Assembly (NCBI RefSeq): GCF_006345805.1
Contig: NW_021825323.1
Location: 1,116,001 to 1,180,000, forward strand
Origin: Octopus sinensis
Lineage: Eukaryota
Length of the DNA stretch: 64,000 bases
Direction of reading: 5' to 3'
Shown: piece after piece, positions 3,341-62,725 of the stretch
How the letters are laid out: each line of letters starts with the position of its first letter
How positions within the stretch are numbered: position 1 is the first letter of the stretch
Position numbers and translations under genes: made by a program
Notes under the pieces: model-generated
Told to the model about the DNA's origin: nothing
Databases searched by the model: none
Seen by the model: only the letters and a program-made list of their open reading frames with translations

Positions 3341-3948
3341 ATGACTTTATCGAACACGGACAATACAATTGACCCTAATTCACCCTCATCCACTGACAAA
3401 CAGTCCGAACACTCCCCTTCTGAAAGTCTTCAAGTATATCAAGGTTTTAACTGTTAAAATACGTTTTTAAGGCTGTACAGAAACCAGGAGATTTCGGACA
3501 GCGTTTAGTCGAACTCAACTTAACGAACTTGAAACGGAATTTCAAAAAGAAAATTATATTTCTAAAAGTCGAAGACTTCAAATATCCAACAAAATTGGAT
3601 TATCAGAAAATACAGTCAAAGTTACTTATTTTTGACTAATTTTAGGTTTGGTTCCAAAACAGAAGAATGAAGAAAAAGCGCCAAACTGTGACACCAATGT
3701 TCATTCCAATCAACTACGGAGGACCTCCAAACTGTTTCCCGATGGACATATTATTCAGAAATATAATGAATTGTGTTCATCCTGCAACGACAAACCCAGA
3801 ATTCTTTATTCCGAATATGAATGGTAATTTTCATGTCGGCAATAATTTTTTTCAACAAACTGCAAATCAAAAAAATAACATGCAGACAACCAAAGAGTGC
3901 GATAATGGCAAAAATAGACTTTTTAAACCATATCTTCATGATATTTAA
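3341..3948 (+). CDS. Evx: Even-skipped (Evx)-like homeobox protein, 2 introns
   Basis: Spliced homeodomain ETRRFRTAFSRTQLNELETEFQKENYISKSRRLQISNKIGLSENTVK|VWFQNRRMKKKRQ. The RRxRTAF, ENY and MKxKRQ signatures fit Evx; a 25-nt intron sits before VWFQNRR and a 28-nt intron just upstream of the homeobox. Confidence 0.8.
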
Positions 3949-10529: not shown

Positions 10530-10940
10530 GACTTGAGAGAAAATAATTTAAAAACCACAACAAAACTAATTGTTCTTACAAAAAATAATGAATTTTTTAT
10601 CAAGTTAAATATTTAAAAAAATTATTTATAATTTAACTAAGTCTACGCTTTTTTCTATTTAAGAATGTTTTCGTTTTTTATTTAACGAGTTTTAAACTTT
10701 CATATATTTATTTTATGTTTCTAGATTTTAATATTATTTTAAATTTTGTTACAAATAATATAAACCAAAGCTATTTTAATCATATTTAAAGATTGAATCG
10801 CGTGTGCAGTGACCTCGAATCTTATCTGGTAGTTTTTTTAAGATTTGTGATCCTAAAATAAAATTTTTCTTGATAAAGATTTTAGCCGTGTCTATCTCAA
10901 TTATTTATTCTTAATGAATTTAAATAAAAAAGACTAATCC

Positions 10941-11796
10941 GGTCCTAAAGTGGCACTCGCTAGGACTGGAAATCCCAAAGGATCAGTATAAGCAATTTGT
11001 TTGTGACGATGTCCGCTTACAATCCCGAATCGAATCTTTACGTAAATCTCTCGACCAACACTGCTTGGCCTGCTTTGAGACGGCATGTCGCCCTCACAGC
11101 GGAGCCTGGCTAAATGCCACTCAACTGCCGAGCATTGGGAACCTTCTGGACTGCGAGTCCGTACGCACTGGAATCTGTTTACGTCTCGGTCTTCGCCTAT
11201 GCGAGCCACATGTCTGCCGCTGTGGCGCGAAAATCTGTCGCTTTGGACTGCACGCTCTATCGTGTAGACGCAGTGCTGGCCGCATCCCGCGTCTCTTAAC
11301 GACCTTATCAGGAGAGCCCTGGAAGTCGCCGGAATCCCCTCCCTGCTTGAACCCTCTGGGATCGATCGGGGGGACGGGAAACAACCTGACGGGATAACTG
11401 TGTTTCCTTTCAACAGGGGGAAGCCTCTCACCTGGGATGCCACGTGTGTGGACTCTTTCTCGCCTCAGAACCTGCTGATATCGGCCTCCGCTCCTGGATC
11501 TATTGTCACAACCGCGGAATGCAAAAAGATGCGGAAGTACTCCTCACTTACGGAGAAGTTCCAATTCCTTCCATTCGCGGTTGAGACTTCCGGTTCCTTG
11601 GGCAGTAAGGCAATCAGCTTCGTTCAGGAAATCGGGTCCCGCATGTCTGCCATCACAGGCGACGCCCGCGAATCGAGATGGTTTTTCGAACGGATATCCC
11701 TTGCGATAGTACGCTCTAACTCTTTCTCGATCGCGTCGGCTTCCCGTCCATGAAGCTTTTAATTAATTAACTTGTTGGTTTGTTCTAATAAAAAAA
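10941..11796 (+). mobile_element. 5'-truncated CRE-like RLE non-LTR retrotransposon (frameshifted)
   Basis: HVCRCG..HALSCRRSAGRIPR, RDGKQPDG..FPFNRGKPLTWDAT, K.RKY; A-rich tail; imperfect TSD AATAAAAAAGA(C)TAATCC. Confidence 0.88.
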
Positions 11797-12622: not shown

Positions 12623-14733
12623 ATGGTGAAACGATTTTAGAATTTTTGTAGTTTTCAAAATTATTATTCAACACAGGAAAGTCTAAAGAAGCAAAAAAAC
12701 AAATCGAGCTTTCAGTCCAAATTCCACAACTCGAAGATTATATTAGTCAACGAGATTACACTGGTGCAATAACACTTCTTGAGGGACAAAATATAGATTT
12801 GTTGATTTTCTAGAATCAAGAAAATGCCGATTCTGATCCTCAAATCCTTTCATGGATCGGTTATTGCTTATTTCACAACGGAGATTTTGAAAATGCTGCA
12901 AAAGTAAATTTCAGGAGTGTTAAAATCAATTTCTAGACATATAAAAGTATTTTAGAGCAGAATCAGAAACAAAAAAATATATGGATAAACTTAGCTTGTT
13001 GTTATTTCAAATTAAAAATGTACGAAGAATGTTTGGAAGCTTTAAAAAAATGTACTTCATTAATTTTAATCATCGTCAGCTGATAAAAGTGAATTAAAGA
13101 CACGACTACAATTTCAATTAGCTGCAATAAACGCTACACGAGGGTCAAAAGATGTGGTCCCTAAGTTAAGCACGTCAGTAGAGGATCAAATGTCAACGGC
13201 CGCCGTACATTTCTCCCAAGGGCAGTATCAAGAGTCACTCGATATTTACAAAAAGTTACTTCAAGAAAACAGGTAAGTTAAAATAAATTCATTTTTTTAC
13301 AAAAAGTGAGTTTATTGCATTAAACGTTTACGTTGCGCTATGCTATTATAAAATGGATTATCAAGACGTTTCACAAGTTGATTTTTGAGATTTAGTTATG
13401 AAAGGAACGGTTGGGACTGTATTTACAGCATTACCCGAAAAGCTCAATTGCATTGAACCTTCGAGCAGCAAATCGTTACAAAATGTATGGAACAATTGAC
13501 CCCTCAGAAGTTACAAATATTTATTTCTAAAATATTATCAGACTGATGTGTGTGAGTTACAAGAACTTATTTCTGGACAAAGAATGCAAAATCAGGATTT
13601 GACAAAGCACAATATGGAAGAATTTTGACTTTTTAATTTTTAGGTTGTTTTTAAAAACGGGGAAAATGCAATAAAAGTTTTTCCTCAAATAATAGACAAC
13701 GTTGATGAAGCCAAAGTAAATTTAGCTATATACTACTTAAAACACGGTTAGTCGTTTAAAAATACTATTCTTTATTAGATAATTTGGAGTCTGCCGCAGA
13801 AATAACAAAAAACGTGGAAACTACGAATCCGACTGAGCATGTACTCAAAGCAGTTATCAGCGCTTACATTGGACAGGAAAATAATTCTGTTTGTATTTAT
13901 TTTTGACTTTTAAGAGCGATCAAATCAAAAATTCAATTCACAATTATTTATCTGTGGGGAACTCAGCCACCGAATGCGGTGATAAATTTAATTTTATTTA
14001 AAGACACAATTCTAGGAAGACAATGCATGGCTTCCGCATACTTTCTAATGAAGCAATTTGAAGACGTCAGTGTATATCTTAATTCAATCAAAGTACTAAA
14101 ATAAAAATAACTTTCAGACTTATTTTACTAACAATGATATCTTCAATTTTAATTACGGACAGGCAAAAGGGATGCTTGGATCTTTCATTGAAGCAGAAGA
14201 GGTTAAAAATAAAAATGACTATTTTTAGGCATTGAAAAATATAAGAGACAAAAAACTAAAATCAACATTGATTTACAAACTTTGGCTTGCCTATGCATGT
14301 TGAAATCAAAAATAACTTTTTAGATATTAACAACAACAGTGCAAGTCTAGCCTGGGACATTTATCTTAAAATGGAGGCTACGAACGAATCTCTGACATTT
14401 CTCCAGCTTATTGCAAACGAATGTCACAGAGTAAAAACAATTTTTACAGGATTTTAGCTCGGGATTTATTATTACTCGGCAAAAGCATTTCATTTGCTAG
14501 AACGGCTGAATTCTGACGAAGAATACTGGGATGGAAAACGGAGTGCTTGTTTGGGGTTATTCCACATGGTGATCACAAAAAATCAACCAATGTTAAAAAA
14601 CAAAAATATTTTTAGTGAACTTTTGGAAGATATTGAAGAAATTCTTCACGAGAGTCTTAACCCACAGGCTGAATATATTCGAAGGCATATTAAAAAATGG
14701 CGACAGGACCATGTCATGGAAAAAACTAATTAA
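12623..14733 (+). CDS. IFT56: Intraflagellar transport protein 56 (TTC26/DYF-13), 15 introns of 25-34 nt
   Basis: [73 protein letters not shown]. First coding exon is ATG only. Two introns have non-GT donors (12784-12813, 13617-13643). Confidence 0.95.
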
Positions 14734-17975: not shown

Positions 17976-18860
17976 TTAATTTTCATGTGCTTTCTTATGA
18001 ATGGTAAAGTAATGAATTCGGTCTGTACCAAATGAACACAATTCGCATTGATAAAATGTTGAATTTTTTTCTCGTGCCCGCATCCTTTGGTCATTAACTT
18101 GTTTTTGAGTTTGTAGTATAAGGCGACCATTTACTTGTTCTGCGGAATATCCATTCTTCTGTGGAACTGGACAGTATCCAAACACGTGTCCATAGTTTCT
18201 ACAATGTTTCATTAAATCGCATTTCCATGTGGAATTGTAGCTGCATGAACCACATTTGAAAATACGCGATAAATCTCTGTTGAAAGAATTATTGAACTTT
18301 GATTCTTTCTTTCGAAATTTTTCATTCCTGTTTTCTGAAATATTTTTGTTTCTATAAGGGACATTGTTAATCACATTTTCAACAGTCAACGTTCTGGGAA
18401 ATCTGTTGTAGTTCAGGCAAGAATTCGGAAAACACATTCTAGCTGGAGCTAGTATATACTGGCCATAATAAGGTTCGAAAAAACACGGGTTGATAGGTAA
18501 ACGGTTCCGACATGTAACATAACATTGATATCCTTGCGCCATTTGTTGATATAATGTTTCATTCATAGAATTGTATTTGAGATTATTGGAAATTTCATAA
18601 TTATAAGATTGAGAATGTGTAATTTGATTTGTTTGATTGAACACTGGTTGACTATTTGAACCATCAATTGGAAATCTTTGAGTAGAATCCGATTTTAGCA
18701 AATTTTCAATAGAATATAGTTGCTCCTTAGATACGGAATGTGGGATATTCTTTTGATCTGGTTGAATAATGTCATCCACGTGTATAGGCATCATTTCCTT
18801 GTCTTTATAAATATCGAATTTTTTATCATTCATGTTTTTTTGATAGTAATTCCAAGACAT
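17976..18860 (-). CDS. C2H2-type zinc-finger protein, apparently intronless
   Basis: FKCGSCSYNSTWKCDLMKHCRNYGH and YQCELCSFGTDRIHYFTIHKKAH within a single 296-codon ORF. Confidence 0.75.
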   Translation of the reverse strand: MSWNYYQKNMNDKKFDIYKDKEMMPIHVDDIIQPDQKNIPHSVSKEQLYSIENLLKSDSTQRFPIDGSNSQPVFNQTNQITHSQSYNYEISNNLKYNSMNETLYQQMAQGYQCYVTCRNRLPINPCFFEPYYGQYILAPARMCFPNSCLNYNRFPRTLTVENVINNVPYRNKNISENRNEKFRKKESKFNNSFNRDLSRIFKCGSCSYNSTWKCDLMKHCRNYGHVFGYCPVPQKNGYSAEQVNGRLILQTQKQVNDQRMRAREKNSTFYQCELCSFGTDRIHYFTIHKKAHEN

Positions 18861-19101
18861 TCTCAAATTTGCCGTTTCCTAAAAAGTAATTTATATATAA
18901 ATAAATTCCGCCATCTTTAATTCTATTATCATCAAAGCTTTAGATATGCCAATATTTTTTTTAAAAGCATGAAAAGTGCTCAAGCGTCAGTTCACAAGAA
19001 AATAAGCAAATTTTAGGTCCTCAAGAACCTCTCAAAATACCAACTGTCACGCCAACGATGCTTGCAAACTAAAATTCGACACACTCACATATGAACAAGA
19101 G

Positions 19102-24915: not shown

Positions 24916-27900
24916 TCCCCAATAAAACCTCGGCCTTCAGCAGGGATTTCCTAAGCCCATTTTTAACAATCCACATTGGTCAAAAACAACTCAAATAGTC
25001 AGTATATTTGTCAACCTATCTTATCTTTTTCTTTCATTTTATCTCTCCATCTATCATTTCTTTTTCTTTCATTTTATTTGTCCTTTATCTCTTCCATTTC
25101 TTTATTTCATTTCTTTCTGTCCATCTTTCTTTTCTATTCTTTTTTATACCTTTCCATCTTTCTTTTTTATTTCTTTCCTACGATGGCTATTTGCTCTTCG
25201 TGCAAAACTAGCAACGATCGGAAGAAAGGTAGATACTGTTCTGGCTGCAACAGTTTCTTCCACCTTTCGTGTGTTCGACTTTCCAGGCGCGTTTCAGCTT
25301 CTCTCATAACCTGGGACTGCCCTGTTTGTCGTTCTTGCAGGCCGGTCCCGGCCAACTGTCCGCTGGAAATCCCTGCTGAAAGTTCATCTCCGTCAGCCGA
25401 AGATGCTTTAAGATTCATCTATTCTTCTCGCTGTAACCGCCAAATTCCGGCACGGATACCGAAGGCAGCGAGGATTCAAGCTGCTCTCTCTTTGTCCACA
25501 GCTATAAACCGCGCTTTGTCATCTAATGACCAGTCTGACTGGTTACTCCTTTTTGGTTTTGCTGTTTTCGGTATTGGGATCCAACCTCCCGGCCCGACAG
25601 CGAGTCTAAAAAACTTTCTCCCGCATCGATTATTAAACAGCAACTCGCCCTATTCGATCATTGTACTTCTCTGTTTCCCTCCCAGTTCGATTCCCTCCAC
25701 TCTGACTCTCACAAATGTGTCGCCCCTTCTGTGGTTAACACTAAAACTTCCTCCGATTGCATTTACCTCCGTCGTAAGGTGAACAGCAAGCTTTTGGATG
25801 GCGATGTCCGTGGAGCTGTCAGACTTGTTGCCTCCTCTAACCGGCTTTTGTCCCCATCTCCTCCCGTTTTGTCTAATTTGAGATCCAAGCACCCCAGTCT
25901 TCCAAAAAACTCCCGCACCCAACCCGCTATCGATACAACCGCCCTTCCGCAACTGCTGGTTACCGCTTCACAGGTCGAGAAGGCACTGAAAAGTTTTTCC
26001 CCAAGCAGTAGTGGGGGTATAGATGGGCTGAAGCCCGGATACATTAAAGACTTGACTTTACCTCTTACTGCTGAGGCAGGCCTTCTCCTCTTGGAATCTA
26101 TCACCAATCTCTGTAACCGTCTTATCGGTGGTAATTTACCGGATTTTGCCCGAGCGATTTTCTTCTCGGCTAATCTCACTGCTTTAGGTAAAAAAGATAA
26201 CGGGGTCAGGCCGATCGCCGTGGGTAATGTTTTCCGCAGATTGGCCGGAAAGCTCGTTTGCCACGTTGTGATCCCCGAGTTGGTCCCGAAATTTTTGCCA
26301 GTCCAATTGGGCGTCAGTGGAGGGTGTGAATCGGCTGCCCATGCCGTAAGAGAACTTATGGATTCTTCATTGGAATATCTTTTAGTTAAACTTGACATAT
26401 CAAATGCGTTTAACACAGTGAGACGGGATCATTTGCTCGAGACCTGCCTTTCTCTCGCCCCCTCCGCCTATCCTCTGGTCCACCTTTCGTACTCACAACC
26501 CAGCCTCCTCCTGTTTGGCGATTCCTTTATCGTCTCATCGACCGGAGTGCAACAGGGAGATCCCCTGGGGCCTTTTCTATTTGCTATGTGTGTCAACTCC
26601 GTCGCTCATTCTGTCCGCTCTCCGGTAAATATCTGGTACTTGGACGACGCGACGATTTGTGGACCTCCCCGCTCTGTCTTAGACGACCTGCGGAGCATTA
26701 TCCCGGCCCTTTCATCCATCGGTCTGGAGATAAACTCAAGCAAGTCCGAAGTCCTAAATCTGAATATTCCTTCCGATTTTTTTGCCGAAACTCTGGACGC
26801 CCTGGAACCTATTCTAAAAGGCGCGCGGGTATCAGAAACAAAGGACCTTGTAATCCTTGGTTCGCCAATTGGTTACGAGGCCCTCTCACAAACGCTCATC
26901 GCCAAGGCAAGCAATCTGTCAAACATGATCGAACGGCTTTCCCTCATTGATGCCCACGTCGGGTTATTTCTTCTGCGTAACTATTTCTCAACTCCGAGGC
27001 TTTTGTACACCCTAAGGAGTTCTCCTTGTTTTCGCATGCCTAATCTGTTATCCGATATCGATTCTATCTTGAAGTCTGGAGCCGAGTATCTGTGCAATAT
27101 CCATTTCGACGCTCTGGGGTGGCTTCAATCTTCTCTGCCTGTTAATCTTGGGGGGATTGGCCTTCGTTCGCCCGTTTATCTGGCTCTTCCTGCCTTCCTC
27201 TCGTCCCTGGCATCATCCCGTGCCCTCACTGACATCGTTCTCAGAAACCTTCCCGAACGAAAAATGTCAGTTGATCACGTGGCCGCTCTGGACCTTTGGG
27301 ATTCTGCGTATACCAAAAGACCTGCCGACCCATCCGTCCAGGGTCAGTGGGATCCTCTGTCCTGCTTCAGAGTCGCTATTTCTCTGCGTCCGCGTTTGAA
27401 GATCTGCGAAATCCACAAGTGCCGCTGTGGGGCCATGATCGACCAGTACGGTCTACACCCTCTTTCCTGCAGACGCAGTGCTGGGCGGGCACCACGCCAC
27501 ACAGCCTTAAATGACGTTGTCTTGAGGGGTCTCAATGCTGCCGGTATTCCATCAATCCTAGAACCGGCTGGGCTTGCTAGGGGAGACGGAAAAAGACCTG
27601 ACGGTCTATCCACCTTCCCCTTTGAGTTCGGCAAGTCGCTGATTTGGGACGCGACATGTTCAGATACTTTCTCTGAACCTAATCTTCCCTTGTCAGCCGT
27701 CGCAGCCGGTTCGGTGTCCCTTAGAACAGAAAAGCTTAAGATTGCGAAATATAGAGAACTCTCGGAGCGATATCTATTCGCCCCTGTTGCTGTCGAGACT
27801 TCAGGGGTCATTGGGGAAAAGTCTTTGACTTTCCTCTATAAGCTCGGACGTCTGATCTCTCTGAAGAGAAATGACACACGCGAGACGGGCTGGCTCCTTC

Positions 27901-28050
27901 AGAGGATTTCCCTTGCCATCGTACGAGGAAACTGTTTCTCCCTCTACGAAGCGGGGAAGTCCTCTAACTAACTGTAGTTTCATTTTGATTTTTCTGGTTA
28001 AAAAAAACATTAGCAAATTAAAAAAAAAAGAATACTAAATTAAAAAATTA
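24916..28050 (+). mobile_element. Near-full-length CRE-like RLE non-LTR retrotransposon (3135 bp)
   Basis: 8-bp TSD CCGACCCC (24908-24915, 28051-28058), TC-rich 5' UTR, PHD-RT-RLE coding region, A-rich tail. Confidence 0.9.
25183..27971 (+). CDS. PHD finger-reverse transcriptase-RLE polyprotein (one frameshift near 25600-25740, in-frame deletion before the RLE knuckle)
   Basis: C4HC3 PHD motif CSSC..CSGC..FFHLSC..WDCPVC. RT motifs RPIAVGNVFRRL, KLDISNAFN, GVQQGDPLGP, WYLDD. RLE motifs HKCRCG..HPLSC..RH..RPDG..WD..K..KY. Confidence 0.85.
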
Positions 28051-35503: not shown

Positions 35504-38469
35504 CTAATTTAATTCATCTTTTAAGATTTGAGAGAATGAAAATGGTTCGAACTTTATTCCTTCTCCTTTATAGAATTTTGACTGAAATTCTACCCTTTGA
35601 AATATAAATCGTTTTAAAACCAATGAAGTCTAAGAGAGTGCAGAAATGCCGAGAGTCCTTCCATTATTACAAGAATCAAAATTGTAAAAATAGCCCAAGG
35701 AATAAACAAAAAAAACAACACGATGAATCCCCCAGTAGATTGTTTCAGACCAAATCTAAGGACCATATTCCACAAAACTTTTGAAAGCTCTTTAAATAAT
35801 TATAAAATAACGAACAAAACCTTTATGAGCCAAACTTAAAGCCCAGAGTCTTAAATAAGATGCTGTATGAGATATACAACTCAAAAAAAATTCGATAGTA
35901 TGAATTATACGCTCAGTCATCGTAGAATTCACAGGAACCTAAGACAACATTAAAAACGAAACAACGGGTTCTTCATGAAATTCGTCAAGATTAATATTGT
36001 CAAGAGGTTGATGTTTTTTATTTTGGTAATATTGAAGTAATGGAGATGCAAAAAGTAGCCAAGGAAAACACAACAATTGCAAAAATATCAAAAATTGTTG
36101 AATTCCTTTCTGTTTTTATTAAATAAAAATGATAAAACTTGGCCATGATAAAAAATCCAAGAGCTACATGATGTATTTGGTGTATATGGCTCGATATAGT
36201 TAAACATCATCATATTTATAAAATCTTAATTCATACGTAAAATAAAAAATACGAATTAGAATACTGGGGACACATTCAGCACGACTGCCATTGTATGCTA
36301 TCCATTTTGCAAAAATCAGAATCACAAGATAGCCAATTGAGGATAAGAAAAAAATCAACATTGGAAGAAATTCAGTGAATATTCGAACTTTTTCCATAAA
36401 TTTTCTTAAATATAAATTTCAATAAATGTCTTACAGGTGATTAAGTACTTGGAGAAAAATTCCAAACATCATGTGAATTACAGCAATTATTATGGATAGC
36501 TTCATTTTATAGGAATTCATGAAAGTCATTTCATTATTTGCCAAAGTCCATATCTAAAAATAAAAATAGCATAAAACTGGATCGATGCCATAAATATACG
36601 GATTACCACTATAGTCTGATTTGACTCCGGTTGTGAACGATCCTTGATTGAGAAATGTAAGATCAGAATAATTTTTATAATTTTTAAACGAAATTCTATT
36701 ATTAAGCAATTTATAGAAAAACCTGTGATATTGTGTAGACCAGGACGATCCGAATATATTAATTGATTTCGAAAAAATGTCGTTATAAAGAAATCCAGTA
36801 TAAATAGAAAAAATACCCATCAATAAAATCATATAACGCCCATCAAAGATAAGAGATATAATCTAATCATATTATTTCATTGTTTATTAACATCATCCTT
36901 ATTCTTCAGTTTGGATATACTATCTTCGAAAATTATGATCAAAAAAGCGGCTATGAGTAATATTATTCCATGTCCAGCATCTCCAAACATGAGAGCAAAG
37001 ATATAAGGGAATGTAATAATTGTAAAAATTGCTTATATAATTATTTTATATATGATACCCGGATTAACTTCCATATAATTTCCAATTCCATAAACGTCAA
37101 TTATGTTTTGAAACGCTCTTGTAAATTTATTTGTTGGGTTATATGTCGGATGAGGCAACGATGTAAAATGTCGTTCAAGAAAAGACGAAGTGCTCCAGCC
37201 GCTCAATTTCTACAATGTTTTCAATATTTAAAAATTACATTTGACTCTTCAAGAACCAGTTTGACCTTTTTAACATCTTCTAGAGGACACCAACATTCAC
37301 CAATAAGCAAAGATTTTGACGAATCAGAATTAAATAGATTTAAGGTAAAATAAATTGCTTTCAATCTTTTAACTTCAAATTTCCAAGCCTTTAAATTGGA
37401 AGAAATTGAATTTAATAAAGTTCTTTTGTAATTTATTGTTTGTTCAATTATCTATAAATAAAATCAATCATTAAACTATTTCTAATTGGTAAAGATTTTC
37501 ATTTACTTCTTGCGATAATGTAGCTCGACTTTCAGAATCACGTGGACAATCAAATAAATCACTTTTTAGTCTGAAAATATTTTATTTGAAATTAATACGA
37601 TAAACAGATTTGGTTTATTTTCGGCAAAAGTCGATCACCGCGGCGAATAATCAAAAAATATCTTTCTGCAAATCTTTCTTAAAATTAAGTAGTTTGATTA
37701 CGTTTTCGCTGTAAAACATGTGTTTGTCGACGTTAAAATTCTTAAAAATTATGTTTCCGTGGCAAAAACGCCAAAGAATTCGATGTAAAATAGGTATTTT
37801 TTCCGAATCAATTATGCCAGTAATGTAGCTTTACTAAAAAGTATATTAAAATAAACTTAAAGCTGTCAAAATTTGAATTTAGAAGAGGTTCATTAGAATC
37901 AGCACATGACCTATTAGAGAAACTATTTTGTTGCTATCAATATTATATCACACATCATTAAACGAAATTTGCAGTTAGTTTGTGTGTTTTCTGCAAAATC
38001 TCGTTAATTTTTAAAAGTCGGCTGTAGCTATTTTGTGATTCTGTCAAATTTTGATTGACATTAACAATTTTTTGATAAACATCGTTGACTTTTTCCTAAA
38101 AAATGTAAATTATAATCAGAATACTTCTAAAAGTATTAAATCAGTTTGTTTTGGAAGAATACAGTCGTCAAAAGTATTACTAATACAAATATTTTCATCA
38201 TTTGAGCATTCTTCTATATAAACTGAATTGATTAGATATAAAAAAAACTTATCTTCTTTTCGAGTTCATCACAAAATCTGACCTCTTTGATGAATTTGGA
38301 ATGAAAACAGTTAGAACCTATCTACATTATTCATAAAGTCTGAATAAAAATTTACATCTCTAAATTCAACAATCCCAATGTCTCCGAATTCTGCCAAACA
38401 GTAAAATGCCGCTTCTTGTTGAATATAGAGATGAAATAATCCCATTTCTTTACTTCTTAATGTCGACAT
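35504..38469 (-). CDS. ATP6V0A: V-type H+-ATPase V0 subunit a
   Basis: [25 protein letters not shown]|[63 protein letters not shown]|VEFQSKFY; many 24-34 nt introns. Confidence 0.95.
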
Positions 38470-39826: not shown

Positions 39827-40134
39827 ATGAAACACAATGTTTTGATTGGGTGTACGGGAAATGTGGCCAGTACCAAGACTCCTCATCTAGTTGAACAATT
39901 GATGGTTAAAGTTCAATCATATTTTCAGAAAACACGACAATGTGGGACCATCCAGCCACTTCCGAGGTTTCGGAAAAACTGCAGAATTGGGGATATGTGC
40001 TTATTCCCTGCATTTATAAGCATTTGGCTTGTGGGGATACTGGTTAGACCTAGTTTTCTTCTTCCCCAGGATTTGGGGCAATGGCTGAGGTGGATGACAT
40101 TTGTAAACAAGTCTCGAATTTTCTTGAACAATGA
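39827..40134 (+). pseudogene. PPCDC: PPCDC (phosphopantothenoylcysteine decarboxylase) with the central portion missing
   Basis: N-terminal HNVLIGCTGNVASTKTP is joined out of frame to C-terminal NTTMWDHP..GYVLIPCIYKHLACGDT|GFGAMAEV. A 27-nt intron is retained at 40043-40069. Confidence 0.75.
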
Positions 40135-40607: not shown

Positions 40608-40680
40608 TACCCCGACTGGGAGTCGAACCCAGAACCTTTCGCGTGTAAAGCGAACGTGATAACCGCTACACCATCGAGGC
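40608..40680 (-). tRNA. tRNA-Val(TAC)
   Basis: GCCTCGA/TCGGGGT acceptor stem, TTCGC-TT TAC AC-GCGAA anticodon arm, GGTTCGACTCC T-arm, downstream T-rich terminator; 73 nt. Confidence 0.95.
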
Positions 40681-41888
40681 CTCCATTACTCTCACGTGAA
40701 AAACTCAACAATTATATAGTTTAATTTAACAATCTGGACAGTGCCCTTCCTCGTGATAACCATCGTATTTCGGTATGTAACAATAAATTTTTATAACTTG
40801 CTCCAAAATTATTGCATTAAAATTAAAAAGTCTAGAATTTTTAGACCATGTTTTTCAAATTGCTCAGCCATTTTTCATGCTTTTATTGACAAATTAATAA
40901 AAAATTTAATCTTACGCTTCATTTTTTATTCTAATTCTTAAGTATATTAATTTATTAATGCCATTTTATTTCAATATAAGGAATTTAAAGCATAAAAATT
41001 TAAATCTCGTGACAAAAAACATTGCTCACTTTTCTTGTTATTGCATATGCCACGTTCTCCCAAGAAACAGTTAACTGAATTTAAAAAAGGGATGATTATT
41101 GCGTACTTTAAAGAGGGTAAATCAATCAGAGAAATCTCAAAAATACTTAATTTGCCGTATTCCACAATTTCATTTAATATTCGAAAATTTCGAGAATTTG
41201 GAACACTGCATCGGAGACCGGGCTCAGGACGTCTTCCGAAACTAAGTTCCCCCCAAATACAATTTTTATGTAATGAAACCGAATCACATCCTAAATTGTT
41301 GGCAGTGGATTTGTCCAACAAAACTAAAGAAACTTTCAATATTAATGTTTTCCCTAGGACAATTCTGAGAACTTTGAATAAAAATGGGGTATATTGTCGT
41401 GTAGCAAAAAGAAAGCCATTGCTTTCTCAAAAAAATATTATTTCGAGATGGTCTGCGTCACTACGATTTTTATCGATATCTGATAGTACATAGAAATCGG
41501 TGATATTCTCAGATGAGTCAATGTTCGATGTTTTTAACAACAGAAAACATCAGCTTGTTTACAGAAAAAATAAAACGGAGTTAAAAAATGCACATTTGCT
41601 GCCGACTGTTAAGTTCGAAGTAGGGAGAGTTATGATTTGGGGCTGTATATCGTATAGTGGTGTAGGCAATTTGGTTTTTATCGAAGAAACTATGAACTCT
41701 GGATATTATATAAATTTACTGTCTAATAATCTGGACCAATCAGCTGAAAAATGGGCTTATCCTCGTTTATTTTTCAACAGGATAATGCTCCATGCTATAC
41801 ATCTCGTATGGTTAAGGCATATTTCGAAACCAAAAAATATATTATTCTTGATTGACCATCGCAATCACCGGATCTTAACCCAATAGAG

Positions 41889-44048
41889 CAGTGGTTCTCA
41901 AACTGGGGTACGCGTACCCCTAGGGGTACGCGAAATTCTGTAGGGGGTACGCGAAAATTTTTTGAAAATCTATTTAATTTTCGTTTCACATAAAAAAGTT
42001 ATTAATTCTAATTATAATAAAAATCATAATTAAATTAAATAATTAATAATAAAATAAATCTCCACGCTACTAGTTTTTCTTATGAGTTTACCTGTTAACA
42101 AGATTCGAAAATACAACGATAGTTATCTCAACTATGGATTTTATTTTGTGATTAAAAACGGTGTGCCACATCCGCAGTGTATTATTTGCCAAAAGATTCT
42201 TTGCCCTGAATCCATGAAACCTTCATTACTTTCTCGGCATCAAGTTTCTAATCATTTCGAAACTATCGGAAAACCAAATGACTTTTTTAAGAACAAAAAA
42301 GATAATATTCGGAAAATAGACGATTCTTTCAATTTTGACATTAATTTTTTACTATCAAAACTCTCTTACATGATTTCATATCGGATCGCAAAAGCCAAAA
42401 AACCACATACAATTGCCGAGAATCTTATTATACCGTGCATTAAGGACATGTTTGAATGTTTCCCTGGCAATAAATTGGAGCATATTGTTCGAAAAATTCC
42501 ATGTTCAAATGATACCGTCAATAGAAGAATACGAGATCTATCCGAAAACATAAAAGAACAAGTTATTTTCTGGTTAATTATTATTAGGTCATTACTGAAA
42601 TAAAAAGTGCTGCCTTTAAAAAATTTTCAATTCAATTGGATGAATCAACAGATGTAGCAAATTGCTCTCAGTTACTCGTTTATGTGCGATATATTTATAT
42701 GGAAAATATTAAGGAAGAATTTTTGTTCAACTATTCCTTACCTTTAAACACAAAAGGTTCTGATATTTTCGATGCAGTTAATTGTTTTTTTGAAACAGAA
42801 GGTACATTTTTGATTTTTTACTTATGATAGGCCTATTGTGGCAAAATCTTAGTGCATGCACCACAGATGGAGCACCAGCTATGCTTGGATGTAACTCTGG
42901 TTTCCGAGGTAGAGTACAATCTGTCAATCCAAATGTAAAACATCTTCACTGTATGTTGCATCGTTATGTTCTTGCTGTGAAGACAATGCCTCTTGAACTT
43001 AAAAATGTTCTTGACGATGTTATTAAAATTGTCAATCATATCAAAAAAAGTCCTTTAAATTCGCGAATTTTTTATTCAATTTGTGAAGAATTTGGTTCAG
43101 ATGAGAAGGTTTTACTATATCACACAGAAGTTCGATGGTTATCCAAAGGAAATGTTCTTTCCAGAGTGCACAGTTTGAAGAATGAAATTTATGAATATTT
43201 TCTTCGCGAAAATACAAATTTATATTTATCAAAGTTATCAAATATGTATTGGGGTGTAATGCTATCTTATTTAACGGACATTTTTTCGCGAATTAATGCT
43301 TTGAATTTATCGGTACAAACTAAGGGAGTTACCATTGTTGACTTTTTAGAAAAAACAAGGTTTTTTACGAAATAATGCAATATTGTAGGTCTTTTCGTAT
43401 GAAGCTCCAACTGTGGATAGATAATACAACAAATTCTAATTTTACTATGTTTGATAAGTTGAATGAAAACATTTTCCATCTAAAATTAAATGAAATAGAA
43501 AATTTAAAACATCAAATAACTTCCCATTTACTTGGATTGAAGAATGAAATTGAAAAATATATACCTGAAATTAATGAAGTAGATCTTAAGTTTTTTGTCA
43601 ATCCTTTTTCCGTAAAAGTTAATGTTTTGCCTTCAAATATTCAAGAAGTTATTGAATTAATAAATTCTTACGAGTCAAAAATCTTATTTGAATCTGCACC
43701 ATTAATTGAATTTTGGTGTAAAATGACATCAAAATATCACAATATTGGATTTTATATAATCGATTTTTTGCTTTTGTTTCCGACTACATATCTCTGCGAA
43801 CAAGGATTTTCATCGTTGTTTAATTTAAAATCAGTTCATCGTGCGAGGCTGAATGTTGTTCATGATATTCGGGTGTGTCTTTCGTCAAAGGATCCAGAAA
43901 TCGATAGATTAGTGATTGATAAACAACACCATCCATCTCATTAATTAAATATTTTTTTTCCTTAATTTTTTAAAAATCAATAAGGGGTACGCGAAAAATT
44001 ATTTAGATGGCAAGGGGTACACAAGGAAAAAAAGTTTGAGAACCACTG
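41889..44048 (+). mobile_element. Complete hAT (Charlie/Buster/ZBED8-like) transposon, 2160 bp
   Basis: Perfect 16-bp TIRs CAGTGGTTCTCAAACT and subterminal GGGGTACGCG repeats at both ends. Confidence 0.93.
42082..43944 (+). CDS. hAT transposase, 592 aa after removing three introns
   Basis: Exons 42082-42561, 42588-42801, 42831-43359 and 43389-43944 sum to 1779 nt in one frame. BED-like CIICQK..H, DESTD, TTDGAP, HC..H, EVRWLS, TTYLCEQGFS. Confidence 0.9.
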
Positions 44049-45199
44049 CTCTAGAAGATAATATTTTCAGTACATGTCCACAATTTTTGAAAATCTACTA
44101 CGAATTTAGAAAAAACCTATCAGGAGAACTGAAAAAAAAACCAATTCGGTGAGAAAATTACTGATTACTTTTAATAGTATTTTTTGTTGGATTTATTAAA
44201 ATTTTTAAATTTTATTAAGAAAGGACTATGTTAGAATTTTTATTAATATTAAATAATTTTAATTTATAGTCTAAAATGCAATAAAAATCTATTGAGGAGA
44301 AAATAAAAGCAAAAAATCTTTACCCTCGCATTTTGGGGCACCCCCGCTTTTTGGGGCACTATGATAAAAATGCTGCCCCAAACCGGGGTCGTACTGTAAT
44401 GCTATATAAAGACATAAACATTGGTGAGCAATTTTTTTTGACGACCACTGTATAACTGATTTCAAAACAGGCGGGAGAGTTTTCGAAACCAATACTTCAC
44501 GATGTAAAAAACAATGTGTAGATAGTATTTGATCATTCTATGCTTTTAGTACAGAAACCTGAATTTAATTATATAAAAAACAATATACAAGTCCATTAAA
44601 TCTTCCAGATAGTGCTTCATCTGTGCTGTAAATATCAATTGCACAATTTTAGGAAAACTTATTTTATCTTTCAGAAGTCGAATCTTTTTAAAATTAAATT
44701 TTGAAATCCGTGAGGCTGAAAGGGCGTCCTAAACTGCGTAGTCTTTTATGTTATTTACGTCTGTTTTTTTCTCCTTTATAATGTTTATAACTTTAGAATA
44801 AAAAAACGGTCGAGAGCACAACGGGCAACGCAACCGTAATAAAAAAATATGTTTCCGAAATCTCTTGATTGCGATTCCGTAGACATCAAAAAGACCAGAC
44901 CATAAGGATCGAAACCCTTTTTGGTACGGCATTTTGGTTCAAAATTAAATGTATTTAAATAAAATACTTTATAATGTCATATTAGTACATCTTTATATTT
45001 TGGGTTCTCAACAGAAAATTTAAATGTAATAACACGATTCTATTTATATCGACTCAATAAATAATACATATTTAAATTTATTTAAAAATCAACTTATTTT
45101 TTTGTCGACTTACACACTATTAAAGAATGAATATTTATATATTATAATTAATTTTTATACAAAATTATGAATAACTAATTTTTTTTAGAGACATGTATT

Positions 45200-48679: not shown

Positions 48680-51240
48680 CATGTGATAAAAATAGTTTAT
48701 TTTCTAATGAGAGCGTCAGTCCTTTTGATATGCACCACTCTTCCACTCTTCTTACGTCTCCTTTTAATTTCCTTACGAGATATCTTTTCTCCACGAAGCA
48801 TCCGTTATTAGTATGTCGTCCGCGTAAATCATGAGACGACTGGTAGGATCTTTCGGTTTTGAAATATCAGCAACGTAAATATTAAAAAGCAGAGGGCTCA
48901 AGACCGAGCCTTGAGCTACTCTTCTTTTGAGATCGACAGACTCCGACAAACGGTTTCCGCATCGTATGTATGACCTCCTCATTGATAAGTAGCTCTTCAG
49001 CCAATTGACCGTTCTAGACCCGGGTTTGATTTTGGGGACACTTTCCAAGAGGCCAAGGTGCCATACGCTGTCAAAAGCTTTTGAGACATCGAGGCAGATA
49101 GCAATAGTCGCTGTATTGTTAGCAAGACTAAGCGAGATGACTTTCTCGAGTTCCCCGAAACAATCTCCACAGGATCTTTTTCGTCGGAATCCCCACCGCT
49201 CCGCTGCAAGTGCACCTGATTCCTCTACGAAGGTGAAAGTCTTGTGAAGACAATCCGTTCTATAATTTTAGAGACGGAGCATATTAGGCTTATCGGCCTA
49301 TAGTTCTCTGCATGGTACTTCATTTTTCCAGGCTTTGGAATCATACGTACGATTGACTTTTTCCAAGAGTCCGGTACGTATCCAAGTCTCCAGCTTGCAT
49401 TGTATAGTGCGGTCAAGTATCGTAGGATAATAATTGAAGCATGTTTGACTACAGTAATTGGAATGTAGTCATGGCCGTGTGAATTGTTCTTGCAGCTCAT
49501 AATTGCGGCATACGTTTCTTCCAACGTTATGTCTCTGCACAGTGGTACTGTATAACTCAAATTAGATCGCAGACTTCTCTGTGCCTCACATATAAATTCT
49601 TTCGGAACCATGTCGATCGGATCCACTTCTTGAACTTTTGCCAGTTGACTTCGCAAATGTGAGGGAACTTCATCGAGCGGGATAGCTATTCCTTTAGTTG
49701 TTTTTAGTCGGATCTCTTCTCCTTTGTTCTCCATATTACTTAGTCTGTTGAAAACCTTCCAAAAATGAGGGTTTTTCTTATTCAGTTTCTAGCATTGACT
49801 CTTCCAAGCAAGGTCTGAATATTTTTCTGCGACATCATTTATTTCTATTTTCACGGTACGAATCTTATCCCGAAGACGAATACGATCTATGGGGTCACTG
49901 CATTGTCTTAGCTTCTTTTCAAGGTTTTCCCAAAGATTCGTCTATCCGGGTTTTTCTGTTAGTATTTGACATGATGTATTTTCTGATTGAAGATTTTCGG
50001 AGAAAGTCCAGTATAGCTTTCTGAGAATTTTATCAAGTTTTTCAATTTGTATATTCGAAGAGATGTTTTCTATTGAATACGGTATCAAATGCATTTTCAT
50101 GATATCTCGAAGTCAGACCAGATTGTCCGAGACGTATCATATCCGATGAAAAGATCTTCGCATATCGTAGATGATGTTCGCATACGTAAAGATTGAGGTA
50201 GGTGATCACTACCAATGTTTATCTCAATTCTTGGTATGCTGCATTGATGAACAAGATCAGCCGATACGAGGAAAACTCCAAGACAATGGTTTGGTTCTCG
50301 TGAGGTCAAAACACTAAAGCCGCAGTTCTCCGATAATCTGAGGAGTATATGACCGTCCGAATTTATATTAGCACATCCGTACAATGTGTGTTTTGCGTTA
50401 AGGTCTCCTATTAGAATTCCTCTATCATTGTTTTGGAAAAATTCTTCAATAAGATTTGAATAATTCTTCATTGCTTTAGAATACATAGCTCCTACAGATA
50501 TCCATCCAAGGGATGTTAGTAGTTTCAATGTAATCAGTTCGCACAAATTTTGTTCGACGATTTTCAAGTCCCTCACCATCAGATTGTCTTTATAATATAT
50601 GGATGTCCAAGTGCCAGCCACTGCGTCAGGTCGCCATGGGATATCAATCGACTGAAAACCATGGATTTTGTGATGCTGCTTTCCCTTAAGCTTCGCTTCA
50701 TTAACAACCAATATGTCCATGTTTACCGATCTAACCAAGTAGGTTAGCTCAGTAGCCCGTTTCCGAATTGACCGGGCGTTGATAAGCGTAAAAACGCTCA
50801 TCTCGTCAAGTTTTGGTGACTGTCCTCCATAACGAGCGCCACCAGTTCCAATAAATTTTTAAACGTTTTTTAGTCGTCGTTTTCGATTTAAGATGGAGAT
50901 CCTCCAGTTTTGCTTTTAAATGTTCAATTGCACTTGTCTTTTCGTCTGCCACCAGTATGTTGCATGGTGGTTGTCCCGGAATTGATTTAGAAGTGTCCCC
51001 GAATTTCAAAGATGCCATTCCTTTTTTGGGTTGAATCATATATTCGGTTGTTCTAAGTTTAATTTTGGTTTTTGCGTAGATATAGTGGGTGTCGCAGTTT
51101 TCGAAGTGTTTGACATGGATTCATAGATATCGTCATCATTCTTAGAAATGTGCCAATATTCAGTCAAGTTAGCGAACCCTGCTGAATTAATAGAATTCAA
51201 AATTGTAACATTGTGATAATAAAAATTATTGGTTCAAATT
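48680..51240 (-). mobile_element. APE-RT LINE, frameshifted and truncated in the RT C-terminus
   Basis: APE motifs INARSI, NEAK, IGDLNAKH, SDHLP. RT motifs YRPISL, CLDVSKAFD, GVAQGSVLSPLLF-like, IYADD. Outer boundaries approximate. Confidence 0.88.
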
Positions 51241-55499: not shown

Positions 55500-56200
55500 G
55501 TGTGAAAAACTTGAAAATAGAATGTTGGTTCAAAATTTTTTTTATCAATATTAGAAGTAGAGATCGAAAATAATTATCACAATCTAAAGCTACTGATGAT
55601 CGAGAAGACGTTGCCACTCAGGATCGCAATGGATATTCTTTGGAACAACCATTGCTTCTCCCGAAGCTCTCTCCGTCTTCTCGAGATCAGATTCCCGATT
55701 TTCCCGACGAGTTCGAACGATTTTTGGCTCATGACCCCGGAGGTTTCTACGGATATTGGGAAGAAGATGAAGTTGTCCAACAGGTTGGAATATTTCTGAA
55801 CTTTATGTACCTCAGCCTTCTCAGCGGCTGAGCCTGGACTGATCGCGGAGTCAACTATATTGGTCTTTGAGAAGGTGTCTGTGCACGTGGAGTCCCACGC
55901 GAGGCATTTCCCATTGCTCCACGGGAAAATGGTGACTCCATCTGGGCGTTTACCGTCTCCACGGTCAAGCCCAACGGGTTCCAGTTCTGTCGGGAATCCA
56001 GCTGCTTGTAACGCAGCCGAAATAGTCTCGTTGATAGCGGAGTGTCTGGGAGCACGGCCAGCACTCCTTCTGCATGACAGGGGATGTAGTCCTTTGGTAT
56101 CGACTTTACTACCACATCGGCATTGGCCCCCCGAACAGACATTAAGTCCCAAGCGTATTGCTACGCCAATCCTATTTTCGTTATGTTCGTTATTTTGGAT
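55500..56200 (-). mobile_element. 5'-truncated CRE-like RLE element
   Basis: ORF 55577-56152: QCRCG..LHPLSCRRSAGRAPRH..RGDGKRPDG..WDST..KVQKY. Confidence 0.88.
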
Positions 56201-56231
56201 GTCGCAGAAAAAGTGAACCGTGATTGTAACT

Positions 56232-57770
56232 CAATTTGTTAATTTTTTTTTTTTTTTTTTTGAAAACCGAAACTTTAATACAGTCAAATTAATTAATAGA
56301 GAATTAATGTCGTGAACTTGAGGGTTAGTCCGACGACGAAGCACTGCGGATAGAGAGGCAGTTCCCGCGAAGAATTGCAACCGAGATGCGCTGGAAAAGC
56401 CAGCTCGTCTCCCTCCGGTCATTTGTATTCTGTGAGATTCTTCCTCCCACAACCCGTAACAGATTTTCTACCTTCTTTCCAACCACACCGGAGGTCTCAA
56501 AGGCTAGGGGGACAAACTCAACGACGTTCGGAAGCACAGCGTACTTCGTCAACTTCCTTTCTTCTGCCAGCGCACATGCGTAGCCTGGTGTACTGGCTGT
56601 TCCTGTGAGCACAGTATCTGAAAAGGAGTCGACGCAAGTTACATCCCAAACAAGAGACCTTCCTCCTCTAAAGGGGAATATAGTCATCCCGTCAGGACGC
56701 TTTCCGTCACTGCGGCAGAGCCCAATAGGTTCAAGGGTCGATGGGAATCCCGCAGAATCCAAAGCCCTTTTCACCACTTCATTGAAGAGGACGTGGCGGG
56801 GAAATCGGCCAGCACCCTCCTACAGGACAATGCGTGTAAACCGTTCGAAGGAATCAAAAAACCACAGCGACAACGGTGAGGTTGGCAGATTTCAAGTCCA
56901 AGTCGAAGACACACTCCGATACGTATAGTTTCGTCTTCCATAAGCAGACCATTGGACGCCAACGGAAGTGCGTTTAGCCAGTCTCCTGAGTGAGGCTGAC
57001 AGGCACAGTTCAAAGAAGCCAGTTCCAACTGGTCGACTCGCGTGCGAAGACTCTCCAACAGGTGTGTGCACCAGATGACATCCCAACTCTTCTGTATTGA
57101 AGGAATCTCCGGAAGGCCAAGTCCGAGCGATCTCCAGGCGAGAACAGCAACAGGGTATTCCGTAAGCTCATCAAGTTCGAGTGAGTTGATAAGAACAGAG
57201 CGAACGAAATTGCCGGAAGCAGACATCGACGAGAGATAACAAGGCAAAGCAAGATCTGCACAAGAACGAACCCCAAGGCCACCAAAGCGGAGTGGAAGTG
57301 CGGCACGTGTACGTCCCACGTCAGTGAACAAAGTGTTCAGTAGTAACTGTAATGATGATGTAACCGCGTCATCCAAATCCAAAAGTTCTTGACGTGAGCG
57401 AAAACAAGGAGACGTTCGGAGCAAAAAGGTTAAACGGGGGATAAAAAGAAAGTTTTTCAGCAAAAACAGCCCCAGATGGGAGCCAAACAGTCGTAATCGG
57501 TCGCAGAGAGGAGCAATCTTATCTCGTTGTGAAACGATAGCCTTCGCAATTCCCTTATCAGAAATCGGTGAACCCAGAATCACAAGATCCGCGAGAGCGG
57601 TTATACGAAGGCCGTCAATTTTCTCCGAAAGGGCCATAAAAACCTCACTCTGTTGGGTTAGCGGCTCCGTAAGTCCGATTAGTTCACATTTTGCACCATT
57701 TAGAGAAAGGCCAATCTTCAAAAATTCAGATATTATGTCACATGCCTCAGGGATTACTATGCCCCACTCG
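56232..57770 (-). mobile_element. 5'-truncated CRE-like element (RT C-terminus plus RLE), long poly(A) tail
   Basis: ORFs 56771-57721 and 56325-56777 (frameshift in the CxxxxGxxxRH motif); about 20-nt A tail near 56243-56262. Confidence 0.9.
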
Positions 57771-57849
57771 TTACCTCCGAATTATTTCTGAGAAATAATT
57801 GATTAATGATTTTTCAATTTTTTAGAAAAATTAATAATCAATCACAACG

Positions 57850-59366
57850 AAGGAAGGAAGGAAGTTTTATTGGAAACAGAGAAGGGTTAAAGGTTAGGGG
57901 GGAGTTTGTATAATGAAACAATAGGACTACCCTATCGACTTCTTCCCAGAAAAAAAAAAGAGACCCCCTCAAGTAATTTTTTTTTTTTTTTTTTTTTTTT
58001 CTTTTCTACCTCTGCAGGTACGTCCCAGTGACAATTGAGTTGGATTTATAACCACTTATAGCTTTTTCGACAGTTTCACCGACCATGGAGGATTTACTTT
58101 CAAGCCACAGGGGGATTGGATCTTCAACTTTTTGGTGGTAAGCAAGCTTCAAAGCGAGCCTGCGAGACTTTTCAAATTTAGTTAAGATGGTGTCCTTCTT
58201 TTTAGAGAAGTACCATCCCTCTTTTCCGTATAGTAGTCCCGGTAGGATCACCGTATTGAAAACGTAGAGGAAAGTATCAGGCTCCAAATTTAACTTCCTC
58301 AGGCAGAACAGAGCATTAGTTGCTTTCCTTTTACTTAATTTTGCGTTTTCGAGATAGTTTCCCTTTTCATCGATGAACAAGCCAAGATATTTAATTGAGT
58401 TTTGTCGAGGTATGTTCTTGATCAGACACGGTAAATTTATTAAATTTCTGCTTTCTGTGATTCTCAGTAATGCGGACTTCTCACGCGCAATAATGAACAT
58501 ATTTTCATCGCACCATTGCTCCACTGTATTCATATATGATATAATCCTTTGTTCGGATAAGGCAGGTTTCGATGAAATGTCAAGGATTACAACATCATCG
58601 GCGTATATCAAAATTTCCGTCCGTGTGTTGACAGGAGACGGCAGATTGCTCATCACAATGTTGAATAATAGAGGACTGAGGACTGATCCTTGAGGACGCC
58701 TCTTTTAAGTTTCAGTTCATCCGAGTCATAGTTCAGAAAGCTTATCACAGAGCGCCTGTCGCGGAGGAAGTCTTTTAGCCATAGGAATAGTCCTTTGTCT
58801 ATGTGACACTTCGCCAGATGTCTAAGGAGACGAGGTGCCAAACCATATCAAAGGCTTTTGAGATGTCTAGAGACACAATTGTCAGACACTCTTTGAAATC
58901 CAGAGCCTTTACAATCGACGAATTGAGTGTATAAAGACAGTCAGCACAGGAACGACCCCTCCGAAAGCCCCACTGCACGTCTTTGAGATAACCATTTCTC
59001 TCGACGTGTTCAGAGAGTCGTTCAAACATTACCCTTTCCATTATTCGACTGATGGTAGGAATTAGGCTTATAGGCCTATAATTGTCGCCAAGTAACCAGG
59101 TTTTCCAGGCTTCCGTATCATCCTTACCTCCGTCAGTTCCATGAAGAAGGGACGTATCCCAAGCTCACACTGCGGGAGAAGAGACATCCCAAATATTCGT
59201 AAAGTTGCTTGGGAGCTTCTTTGAACATGCGCATGGTTATCTTGTCCTTTCCCGGAGCGTTATTTTTGGAGTATCTAACTGCATTTTCCACGTCTTTGCA
59301 CGTTATAGATTCCGAGCACATTGGTAATTCAGTAATACCGTGCTTCCTTAATGGGAAAGTTTGCAA
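57850..59366 (-). mobile_element. LINE RT remnant with 3' UTR and (TTCC)n tail
   Basis: KNNAPGKDKI, QWGFRRGRSC, SLDISKAFD, IYADDVV, IKYLG; several frameshifts. Confidence 0.85.
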
Positions 59367-61040: not shown

Positions 61041-61261
61041 AATTATAGCACGCTAAAAATTTTTAAAAAACATAACTTTTTTAAATTATTTAAGTACATG
61101 GACAAAAACTAATTTAAATCAATACAAGGCATAGTTAAACTTTATAACTGGCCATAAAAATAATATTTGTGATAATCAAAGGATATTACGTGGAAAATGC
61201 CTGTCCATCCACTCGGCGACTCATCTAATTTAGTTAACTTCTATAATAATCTAATCAGATT

Positions 61262-62282
61262 TTGACGAAATGGGCTGGAAACAGGCTATCCTGCCTATCA
61301 GGCACGGGGGTCTCGGATTCCAAGCCCCCTCGGTCCTCTCCTTGCCATGCTTTCTTTCTTCCTCTCACCGATGCATGCCTCTCGTAGTCCAGATCCTTCC
61401 TCCTCCCTCTGGATCGGTCACGGACTTGTTGTGGACAGATTGCGGACTAAAAACTCCCGTGGACCTATGCCTTATGCGCGAGTGGACGGAGATCAGCAGC
61501 TCTCAGTTTTTCCGGTACTTACTGTCTCACGGAGACCAACACCGGCGTGCTTGTCTGTTGTCTGGAGCATCTCCACGGACTGGCGCCTGGATCAACGCCT
61601 ATCCTTCCCCTGCAGCTGGAACCTTCCTGGACCCAGACTGTTTAAGAATCGGAATATCTCTCCGACTCGGCTTGGACATTTGCCAGCCTCACCAATGCCG
61701 TTGCGGGGCTCATATAGACCGCAAAGGTCTACACCCGCTCTCCTGCCGCAAATGCCCTGGGAGGCTCCCCAGGCACGGACAGCTTAATTCCATAATAAAG
61801 CGTCTGCTCGAGGCAACCTGCATCCCGTGCCAGCTGGAGCCCTCTGGCCTTAACAGGGGCGATGGCAAGAGGCCGGACGGCGTCTCGCTCTTCCCGTTCA
61901 AGTGCGGCAAAGCGATCGTCTGGGACGCGACATGCTCTGACACTTTTGCGTCAACATGCCTTCTCGCGTCCGCGATCGAAGCTGGCACAGCGGCGAGGAG
62001 GGCAGAGACCCGGAAGAAAGACAAGTACGCCTCGCTCGCCGACAGATTCCTCTTTGTGCCTGTTTCAGTCGAAACATCAGGCACATTCGGCCCAGCCACG
62101 CTACGTTTTCTCACCGAGAGAGGCCGTCACCTCGGGAGGATTAGAAACGACCCCCGCGAGGTAAATCGGCTTTTTGAGCGCGTCTCAATAGCCGTACTCA
62201 GGGGGAACAGTTTCTCTATTCTCTCTGCGGCTAGTAGCTGACTTCCTGTTCCATTTTCTTTTCTATTTCGAAAAAAAAAATT
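61262..62282 (+). mobile_element. 5'-truncated CRE-like element with an open RT-C/RLE frame
   Basis: ORF 61270-62241; 13-bp TSD ATCTAATCAGATT (61249-61261, 62283-62295); A tail. Confidence 0.92.
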
Positions 62283-62349
62283 ATCTAATCAGATTAGTAG
62301 AAAACTAAAAAAAGTTAATTCCACCCTATCAAGGTCAAATTTGATAACA

Positions 62350-62725
62350 ACTTTAATTTTGATTCATAATCAAAGGATTCGGCAAGTCTCTGTTATGGGA
62401 TGCGACGTGTTCAGACACTTTCTCGGAGCTTAACCTTCCTTCTTCAGCTGTCGAGGCTGGCTCAGTCTCTCGCAAAACCGAGAAGATGAAGATTGAAAAG
62501 TACAAGAAGCTCTCTGAACGGTATCTGTTCACTCCCATCGCCGTCGAGATTTCCGGCGTCATCGGCGAAAAGTCTCTTTCCTTTCTGAAAAAGCTTGGCC
62601 GCATGATCTCCCATAAACGGGGAGACCCACGCGAGTCCAAGTGGCTTCTCGAAAGGATTTCCTTGGCTATAGTACGTGGAAACTGTGTTTCCATTTACGA
62701 GGCCGGGAATTTAGTTAGTTAATAA
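62350..62725 (+). mobile_element. Short CRE-like 3' fragment, close to the 24916-28050 subfamily
   Basis: GKSLLWDATCSDTFSE..KIEKYKKLSERYLF..ERISLAIVRGNC..YEAG. Confidence 0.85.

Follow-up and report, generated by a model that had tools for sequence, protein, structure and literature searches.

Few bases in eukaryotic genes are as fixed as the U at position +2 of the 5′ splice site. Among human introns, GA donors make up about 0.006% and GG donors about 0.014% (PMC5714493). The copepod Eurytemora affinis carries GA or GG donors in 10 to 12% of its introns, mostly newly gained and lineage-specific ones (Robertson 2017, PMC5714493), and the introns of Oikopleura dioica are rich in GA-AG (PMC7072748). 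In Fritillaria borealis, about 95% of the introns are noncanonical at both ends (e.g., AG-AC), and U2AF is encoded by duplicated genes; in this and other tunicates the major spliceosome handles introns that break the GT rule, and modification of U1/U6 has been proposed (PMC13326754).

Ultra-short introns have been described in dicyemids. The median intron length of Dicyema sp. is 27 bp (PMC6543705, with Ogino 2010 cited there), the 5′ splice-site logo of Dicyema japonicum is reduced to "GTa" (PMC13644364), its genome has 36.7% G+C and 49% repeats (Lu 2019, PMC6736024), and introns this short are found among 51 animal genomes only in myxobolid myxozoans and D. japonicum (Hadjez 2026, PMC13644364). 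As far as the accessible sections of these papers go (PMC6543705, PMC6736024, and PMC13644364), they describe only GT donors, and the dicyemid annotation pipelines (TopHat, AUGUSTUS, and BRAKER) accept canonical junctions only and do not call GG/GA donors (PMC6736024). Our literature search found no report of noncanonical donors in dicyemids.

We analyzed a candidate GG-AG intron in the IFT56/TTC26 gene of a 64-kb stretch of DNA, here called the window. Judged from the sequence, the candidate is probably an ultra-short, U2-type spliceosomal intron whose noncanonical donor is tolerated in splicing. Like the introns of Eurytemora and Oikopleura, this candidate and a second, GA-AG intron of the same gene appear to be U2-type, keep G at +1 and AG at the 3′ end, carry A or G at +2, are needed for a full-length protein, and are overlooked by standard annotation. 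In contrast to both systems, the IFT56 introns are only 24 to 34 nt long. As in the tunicates, the major spliceosome would handle introns that break the GT rule, but unlike in Fritillaria, the 3′ AG is invariant and GT is dominant. The window shares with dicyemids a median intron of 27 nt, a conserved exon/intron structure, a GT(a) logo, and an A/T-rich, repeat-laden genome; the GG and GA donors differ from the GT donors described there. The GG/GA donor class is thus already known, and the traits that set the present case apart are the ancient intron positions and the extreme shortness. The features of the locus are as follows.

12623 to 14733, forward strand: whole IFT56/TTC26 gene, 17 exons and 16 introns of 24 to 34 nt (gene model).
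12652 to 12783, forward strand: IFT56 exon 2 (homologue alignment).
12764 to 12820, forward strand: competing canonical GT-AG excision of 57 nt in phase 1 (de novo dynamic programme and enumeration).
12784 to 12813, forward strand: candidate GG..AG intron, 30 nt, phase 0 (spliced alignment and conserved position).
12811 to 12813, forward strand: in-frame TAG stop (three-frame translation and unspliced read-through).
12814 to 12903, forward strand: IFT56 exon 3, 30 residues (homologue alignment and spliced alignment).
13617 to 13643, forward strand: second noncanonical intron, 27 nt, GA..AG, phase 0 (gene model and spliced alignment).

The segment at 12784-12813 reads GGACAAAATATAGATTTGTTGATTTTCTAG, is preceded by ACA CTT CTT GAG (TLLE), and has the stop as its last codon, after which the reading frame picks up again and aligns with IFT56 homologues. 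Sequence and three-frame translation therefore agree with the original prediction, which had described an in-frame TAG at the end of the segment followed by an IFT56-like frame; the sole internal GT (12801) likewise gave the predicted 13-nt, frame-shifting excision when the sequence was read again. Because the TAG blocks the frame between two homologous coding blocks, no full-length IFT56 protein would be made if the segment were kept. The 3′ end of the candidate intron is TTTTCTAG, with a T-rich stretch before AG, GATTTTCTAG. Since AG both precedes the segment and ends it, excision of 12784-12813 (GG..AG), 12783-12812 (GG..TA), or 12782-12811 (AG..CT) gives an identical spliced mRNA, and the boundary is therefore set only by the AG-acceptor convention and the conserved phase-0 position. 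The 30-mer occurs once in the window, and a repeat or insertion origin was rejected. Stop read-through or a variant genetic code was rejected as well, as the exons elsewhere contain no in-frame TAG, TAA, or TGA and as a retained segment would stretch the linker from the 14 residues of homologues to 23 residues and a stop.

After removal of the 16 introns, the gene has a 553-codon open reading frame, and no other error, frameshift, or stop was found in its 1.66-kb coding sequence. In a protein database search, this frame matched the IFT56 proteins of many animals collinearly over its full length (E about 1e-165, 45 to 49% identity, and 94 to 99% coverage); the same search returned no near-identical IFT56 protein, with a best identity of 49%, and thus neither a protein nor a transcript from the source organism itself. 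The 11-residue string that closes exon 2, including its TLLE end, is found unchanged in 42 of 120 homologues, and G39, A40, L43, and L44 are invariant in the homologue alignment. The second noncanonical intron, at 13617-13643, carries an in-frame TGA and is flanked by KHNM and VVFKNGE.

We next turned to a protein-guided spliced aligner (BLOSUM62), in which a GT-AG intron was charged -8 and a G[ACG]-AG intron -16. With Branchiostoma IFT56 as the guide, 15 introns were recovered, including 12784-12813 (GG) and 13617-13643 (GA), and the former was chosen in spite of the double penalty on non-GT donors. The 16th intron, directly after ATG, comes from the gene model and not from the guide alignment. 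For comparison, the IFT56 proteins of Trichoplax sp. H2 and Lottia gigantea were each aligned to their own locus and gave 18 and 14 introns, respectively. In each of them, a phase-0 GT-AG intron falls precisely between TLLE and F and another between KHNL and VVFR, the position of 13617-13643. All 14 Lottia introns match window introns in position and phase, and 15 of the 16 in the window have such a counterpart in Lottia and/or Trichoplax, though shrunk to 24 to 34 nt. The shared phase-0 position therefore points to 12784-12813 as an ancient intron that has shrunk and whose position, on the evidence of these gene structures, predates the bilaterians. The V-ATPase subunit a introns show the same pattern of kept positions in comparison with Nematostella.

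These results support the original prediction of a 30-nt intron with a donor that reads GG in this assembly. The same proposal had allowed a 33-nt version with a GA donor, which lost ground, as the introns of the orthologues directly follow the E codon. The GA case that it had mentioned nearby is equally well supported, with the position and phase of 13617-13643 common to Lottia and Trichoplax.

For a census of donors in the window, homology-guided gene models were built for six genes.

V-ATPase subunit a: 18 GT-AG introns (homology-guided model).
Plastin: 10 GT-AG introns (homology-guided model).
SSRP1: 11 GT-AG introns (homology-guided model).
NUDT21/CFIm25: 5 GT-AG introns (homology-guided model).
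Rab5: 2 GT-AG introns (homology-guided model).
IFT56: 14 GT-AG introns (homology-guided model).

In total, 60 GT-AG introns were confirmed by homology, and the only 2 solid non-GT donors (2 of 62, about 3% of the window introns) were both in IFT56; in the five other genes, 46 of 46 confirmed introns began with GT. G at +1 was found in all 62 introns. GT is thus still the rule, at about 95%, and T at +2 is strongly preferred in the window. The original suggestion that any base is accepted at +2 goes beyond these data, and tolerance of GG and GA at low frequency is the best reading. The 60 confirmed introns showed hardly any donor consensus beyond G-T-(T/A), with G at -1 in 40%, and a T-rich acceptor profile at -6 to -3. 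All but one (59 of 60) were 23 to 37 nt long, with a median of 27 nt and 77.5% A+T; the exception was a very A/T-rich NUDT21/CFIm25 intron of 72 nt (21597-21526, reverse strand).

Several further non-GT donors were considered. The segment at 37709-37678 (reverse strand), in the V-ATPase subunit a gene at 38469..35525, is the one GC case that came up; it is readable either as a 32-nt GC-AG intron of phase 1 or as a 44-nt GT-AG intron of phase 2 and is thus ambiguous. Nematostella has no intron at this position, so the conserved-position comparison cannot choose between the two readings. In the same gene, a GC-AG "intron" at 36190-36164 was dropped as unneeded, since the sequence there keeps the frame and contains no stop, and a GA-AG call at 36001-35939 was replaced by GT-AG 35962-35939. 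A 30-nt, A/T-rich GAATTT...TTTTTAG segment at 18908-18879 (reverse strand) directly follows ATGGCG and stands upstream of a 300-codon open reading frame (17979-18878); as a third G[AG]-AG donor, without homology support, it is speculative. De novo gene finding with codon log-odds and an intron model served only to nominate junctions; the codon signal was weak in the A/T-rich genome, and genes were fused with transposon reading frames. Six of its 10 non-GT calls fell in transposons, 3′ ends, or DNA between genes and were discarded.

G at -1 and A at +3 are present in both solid non-GT donors and in the speculative case at 18908-18879. With only two or three instances, this context may hint at an echo of the AG/G[AG]A donors of Eurytemora (PMC5714493), where exons end in AG and A is found at +3. 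The GG donor (GAG/GGA) matches both features, whereas the GA donor (ATG/GAA) matches only G at -1 and A at +3, as it follows TG and not AG. Unlike the large share in Eurytemora, the 2 of 62 noncanonical donors in the window are at ancient conserved positions and would be mutated old introns.

The donor of the candidate, GG at 12784, is neither GT nor GC, in contrast to the GT of 60 out of 60 reference introns. Its length is within the 23- to 37-nt range, and its A+T content (73%) compares with a mean of 77.5%. Composition agreed weakly: the Markov score of the 30-mer was +0.6 bits, at the 12th percentile of true introns (average, +4.2 bits), and 5.9% of exon decoys scored higher. Removal of the 30 nt leaves a linker of 13 residues, where 88 of 89 homologues have 14.

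To find canonical ways around the stop, every in-frame, stop-free excision bypassing the TAG was enumerated. Those with standard ends were GT-AG 12764-12820 (57 nt), 12746-12820 (75 nt), and 12715-12813 (99 nt) and GC-AG 12766-12813 (48 nt), together with several long AT-AC options; in the full enumeration, no GT-AG, GC-AG, or AT-AC excision past the TAG spares (G)AITLLE. The original prediction had considered the GT inside its segment; beyond those coordinates a canonical excision does exist, GT-AG 12764-12820, at the cost of GAITLLE and NQ. A larger canonical intron (57 or 48 nt), whose protein would lack GAITLLE, would have standard dinucleotides and keep the frame, and the 57-nt version was picked by the de novo model under a heavy non-GT penalty. 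However, it would lose the four invariant residues G39, A40, L43, and L44, which are encoded in frame, and break the string identical in 42 of 120 homologues, shift the intron off the conserved phase-0 position, and fall outside the observed length range. Its composition is also exon-like, at -5.6 bits for the 57-nt excision (below every confirmed intron) and -5.1 bits for the 48-nt excision, and we consider such an intron very unlikely.

Other boundaries with noncanonical ends were also compared, namely, GA-AG 12781-12813 (33 nt), GA-AG 12785-12820 (36 nt), and CA-AG 12787-12813 (27 nt). None of the three contains a stop, their lengths fall in or close to the local range, and the 27-nt version restores the 14-residue linker length of 88 of 89 homologues. 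Nevertheless, the orthologous intron lies exactly after the E codon, which the 33-nt version loses; this version also has a lower composition score (-1.2 bits), and the CA donor lacks the G at +1 common to all 62 introns. The chance that one of these three is correct is very small, and all readings with other boundaries taken together are still improbable.

The G+C content of the window is about 33%, and fragments of LINE, Tc1, and hAT elements abound in it, a transposon load that fits the roughly 49% repeats of D. japonicum. The best V-ATPase and plastin matches lean spiralian, and the presence of a ciliary gene speaks against a myxozoan. The short introns, the base composition and repeats, the ciliary gene, and the spiralian-leaning matches therefore point to a dicyemid, and the DNA very likely comes from a Dicyema-like animal.

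The GG and GA donors were then weighed against two explanations without unusual splicing. G at 12785, and A at 13618, could stem from a mistake in sequencing or assembly, or the consensus could show a minor allele, with GT as the true donor. Each of the other 60 confirmed introns begins with GT, as do the orthologous Lottia and Trichoplax introns, and published dicyemid assemblies were made from pooled animals (PMC6736024), both of which would suit such an origin. However, two independent errors exactly on donor +2 in a 2.1-kb gene are very improbable at realistic rates; by our own arithmetic, the chance of at least two such errors among 62 introns is about 0.002 at an error rate of 1e-3. In addition, the coding sequence is otherwise free of errors, frameshifts, and stops. 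An error or a minor allele is therefore unlikely, and if the base call is right, the rule-breaking start signal is probably tolerated by the splicing machinery of the animal.

The location of both solid non-GT donors in one gene counts against tolerated splicing and also fits a damaged allele; this clustering therefore keeps both the error and a dead allele under consideration. In the latter case, an IFT56 copy or allele would be newly inactivated, with splicing stopped by two donor mutations, the introns kept, and translation ending at 12811. Gene loss is frequent in parasite lineages, and a PPCDC-like gene in the window also looks truncated. In contrast, the 553-codon frame is otherwise intact and 47% conserved, like the neighboring housekeeping genes, and a newly dead gene should also show nonsense or frameshift lesions; from target sizes, we estimate a chance of about 0.003 that both of two disabling hits would fall on donor +2 and none elsewhere. 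Moreover, dicyemids are ciliated. Inactivation of the gene is thus improbable.

If splicing of the candidate is tolerated, the following history may be proposed. The donor of the ancient intron would have changed from an ancestral GT to GG while excision continued, and GA-AG 13617-13643 would have had the same history. The 5′ splice-site consensus would have decayed to little more than G-T-(T/A), with length held at about 23 to 37 nt, and such a poor consensus would leave only 2 to 4 base pairs with U1 at most introns. The pairing of splice sites would then depend probably mainly on G at +1, an AG placed a short and constant way downstream, and a high A/T content, and intron definition across 23 to 37 nt and the T-rich stretch before AG would probably hold most of the information. 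A transversion at +2 could thus lower efficiency without abolishing splicing and be tolerated at low frequency, and G at -1 and A at +3 may aid this tolerance through added pairing with U1/U6. More tentatively, the requirement at +2 may be relaxed genome-wide in dicyemids, with a few per cent of the ancient introns carrying GG or GA, and perhaps GC, donors; this is possible, although we would not yet expect it. Recognition in that case would be by G at +1, a length ruler of about 23 to 37 nt, and the 3′ AG, splicing would be normal, and GT/GC-only annotations would systematically break such dicyemid genes.

If confirmed, the IFT56 introns would add a third lineage of animals that uses GG/GA donors constitutively, and they would be ancient introns that have lost GT, not new gains, in the bilaterian with the shortest introns. 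They would link splice-site decay to intron miniaturization and provide a natural test of the minimal 5′ information that a spliceosome needs. Dicyemid gene sets would then need reannotation with noncanonical donors allowed.

U12-type introns can have unusual termini, as the candidate does. However, GGACAAAATATAGATTTGTTGATTTTCTAG has neither the 5′ RTATCCTT motif nor a TCCTTAAC-like branch site near its 3′ end, and U12-type identity was rejected. A motif scan of the window showed no excess of U12-type motifs, and an RNA gene search found no U1, U2, or U6 snRNA gene in the 64 kb. A U11 snRNA gene is located at 44805-44922 on the reverse strand (Rfam RF00548, 63 bits versus a gathering score of 39); its 5′ AAAAAGGG is intact, and it has an Sm-like U-run. 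Because of this gene, the minor spliceosome seems to have been retained in the reduced genome.

Other features were observed in the window, as follows.

1139-1633, 10924-11750, 25539-27968, 40996-41883, 42058-43941, 48776-50858, 55580-59366, and 61255-62700: many RT/LINE-like reading frame fragments, a Tc1/mariner-like transposase, and a hAT-like reading frame.
39827-40131, forward strand: PPCDC-like (phosphopantothenoylcysteine decarboxylase) gene, with N- and C-terminal parts present and about 95 central residues absent.
40608-40680, reverse strand: tRNA-Val (anticodon TAC).
3471-3945, forward strand: homeobox gene.

The frames of the PPCDC-like gene, compared with a guide sequence, are not joinable by any G*-AG intron, and the gene is possibly truncated or a pseudogene. 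The homeobox gene encodes ...RRFRTAFSRTQLNELETEFQKENYISKSRR...WFQNRRMKKKR and has a short intron inside the homeodomain.
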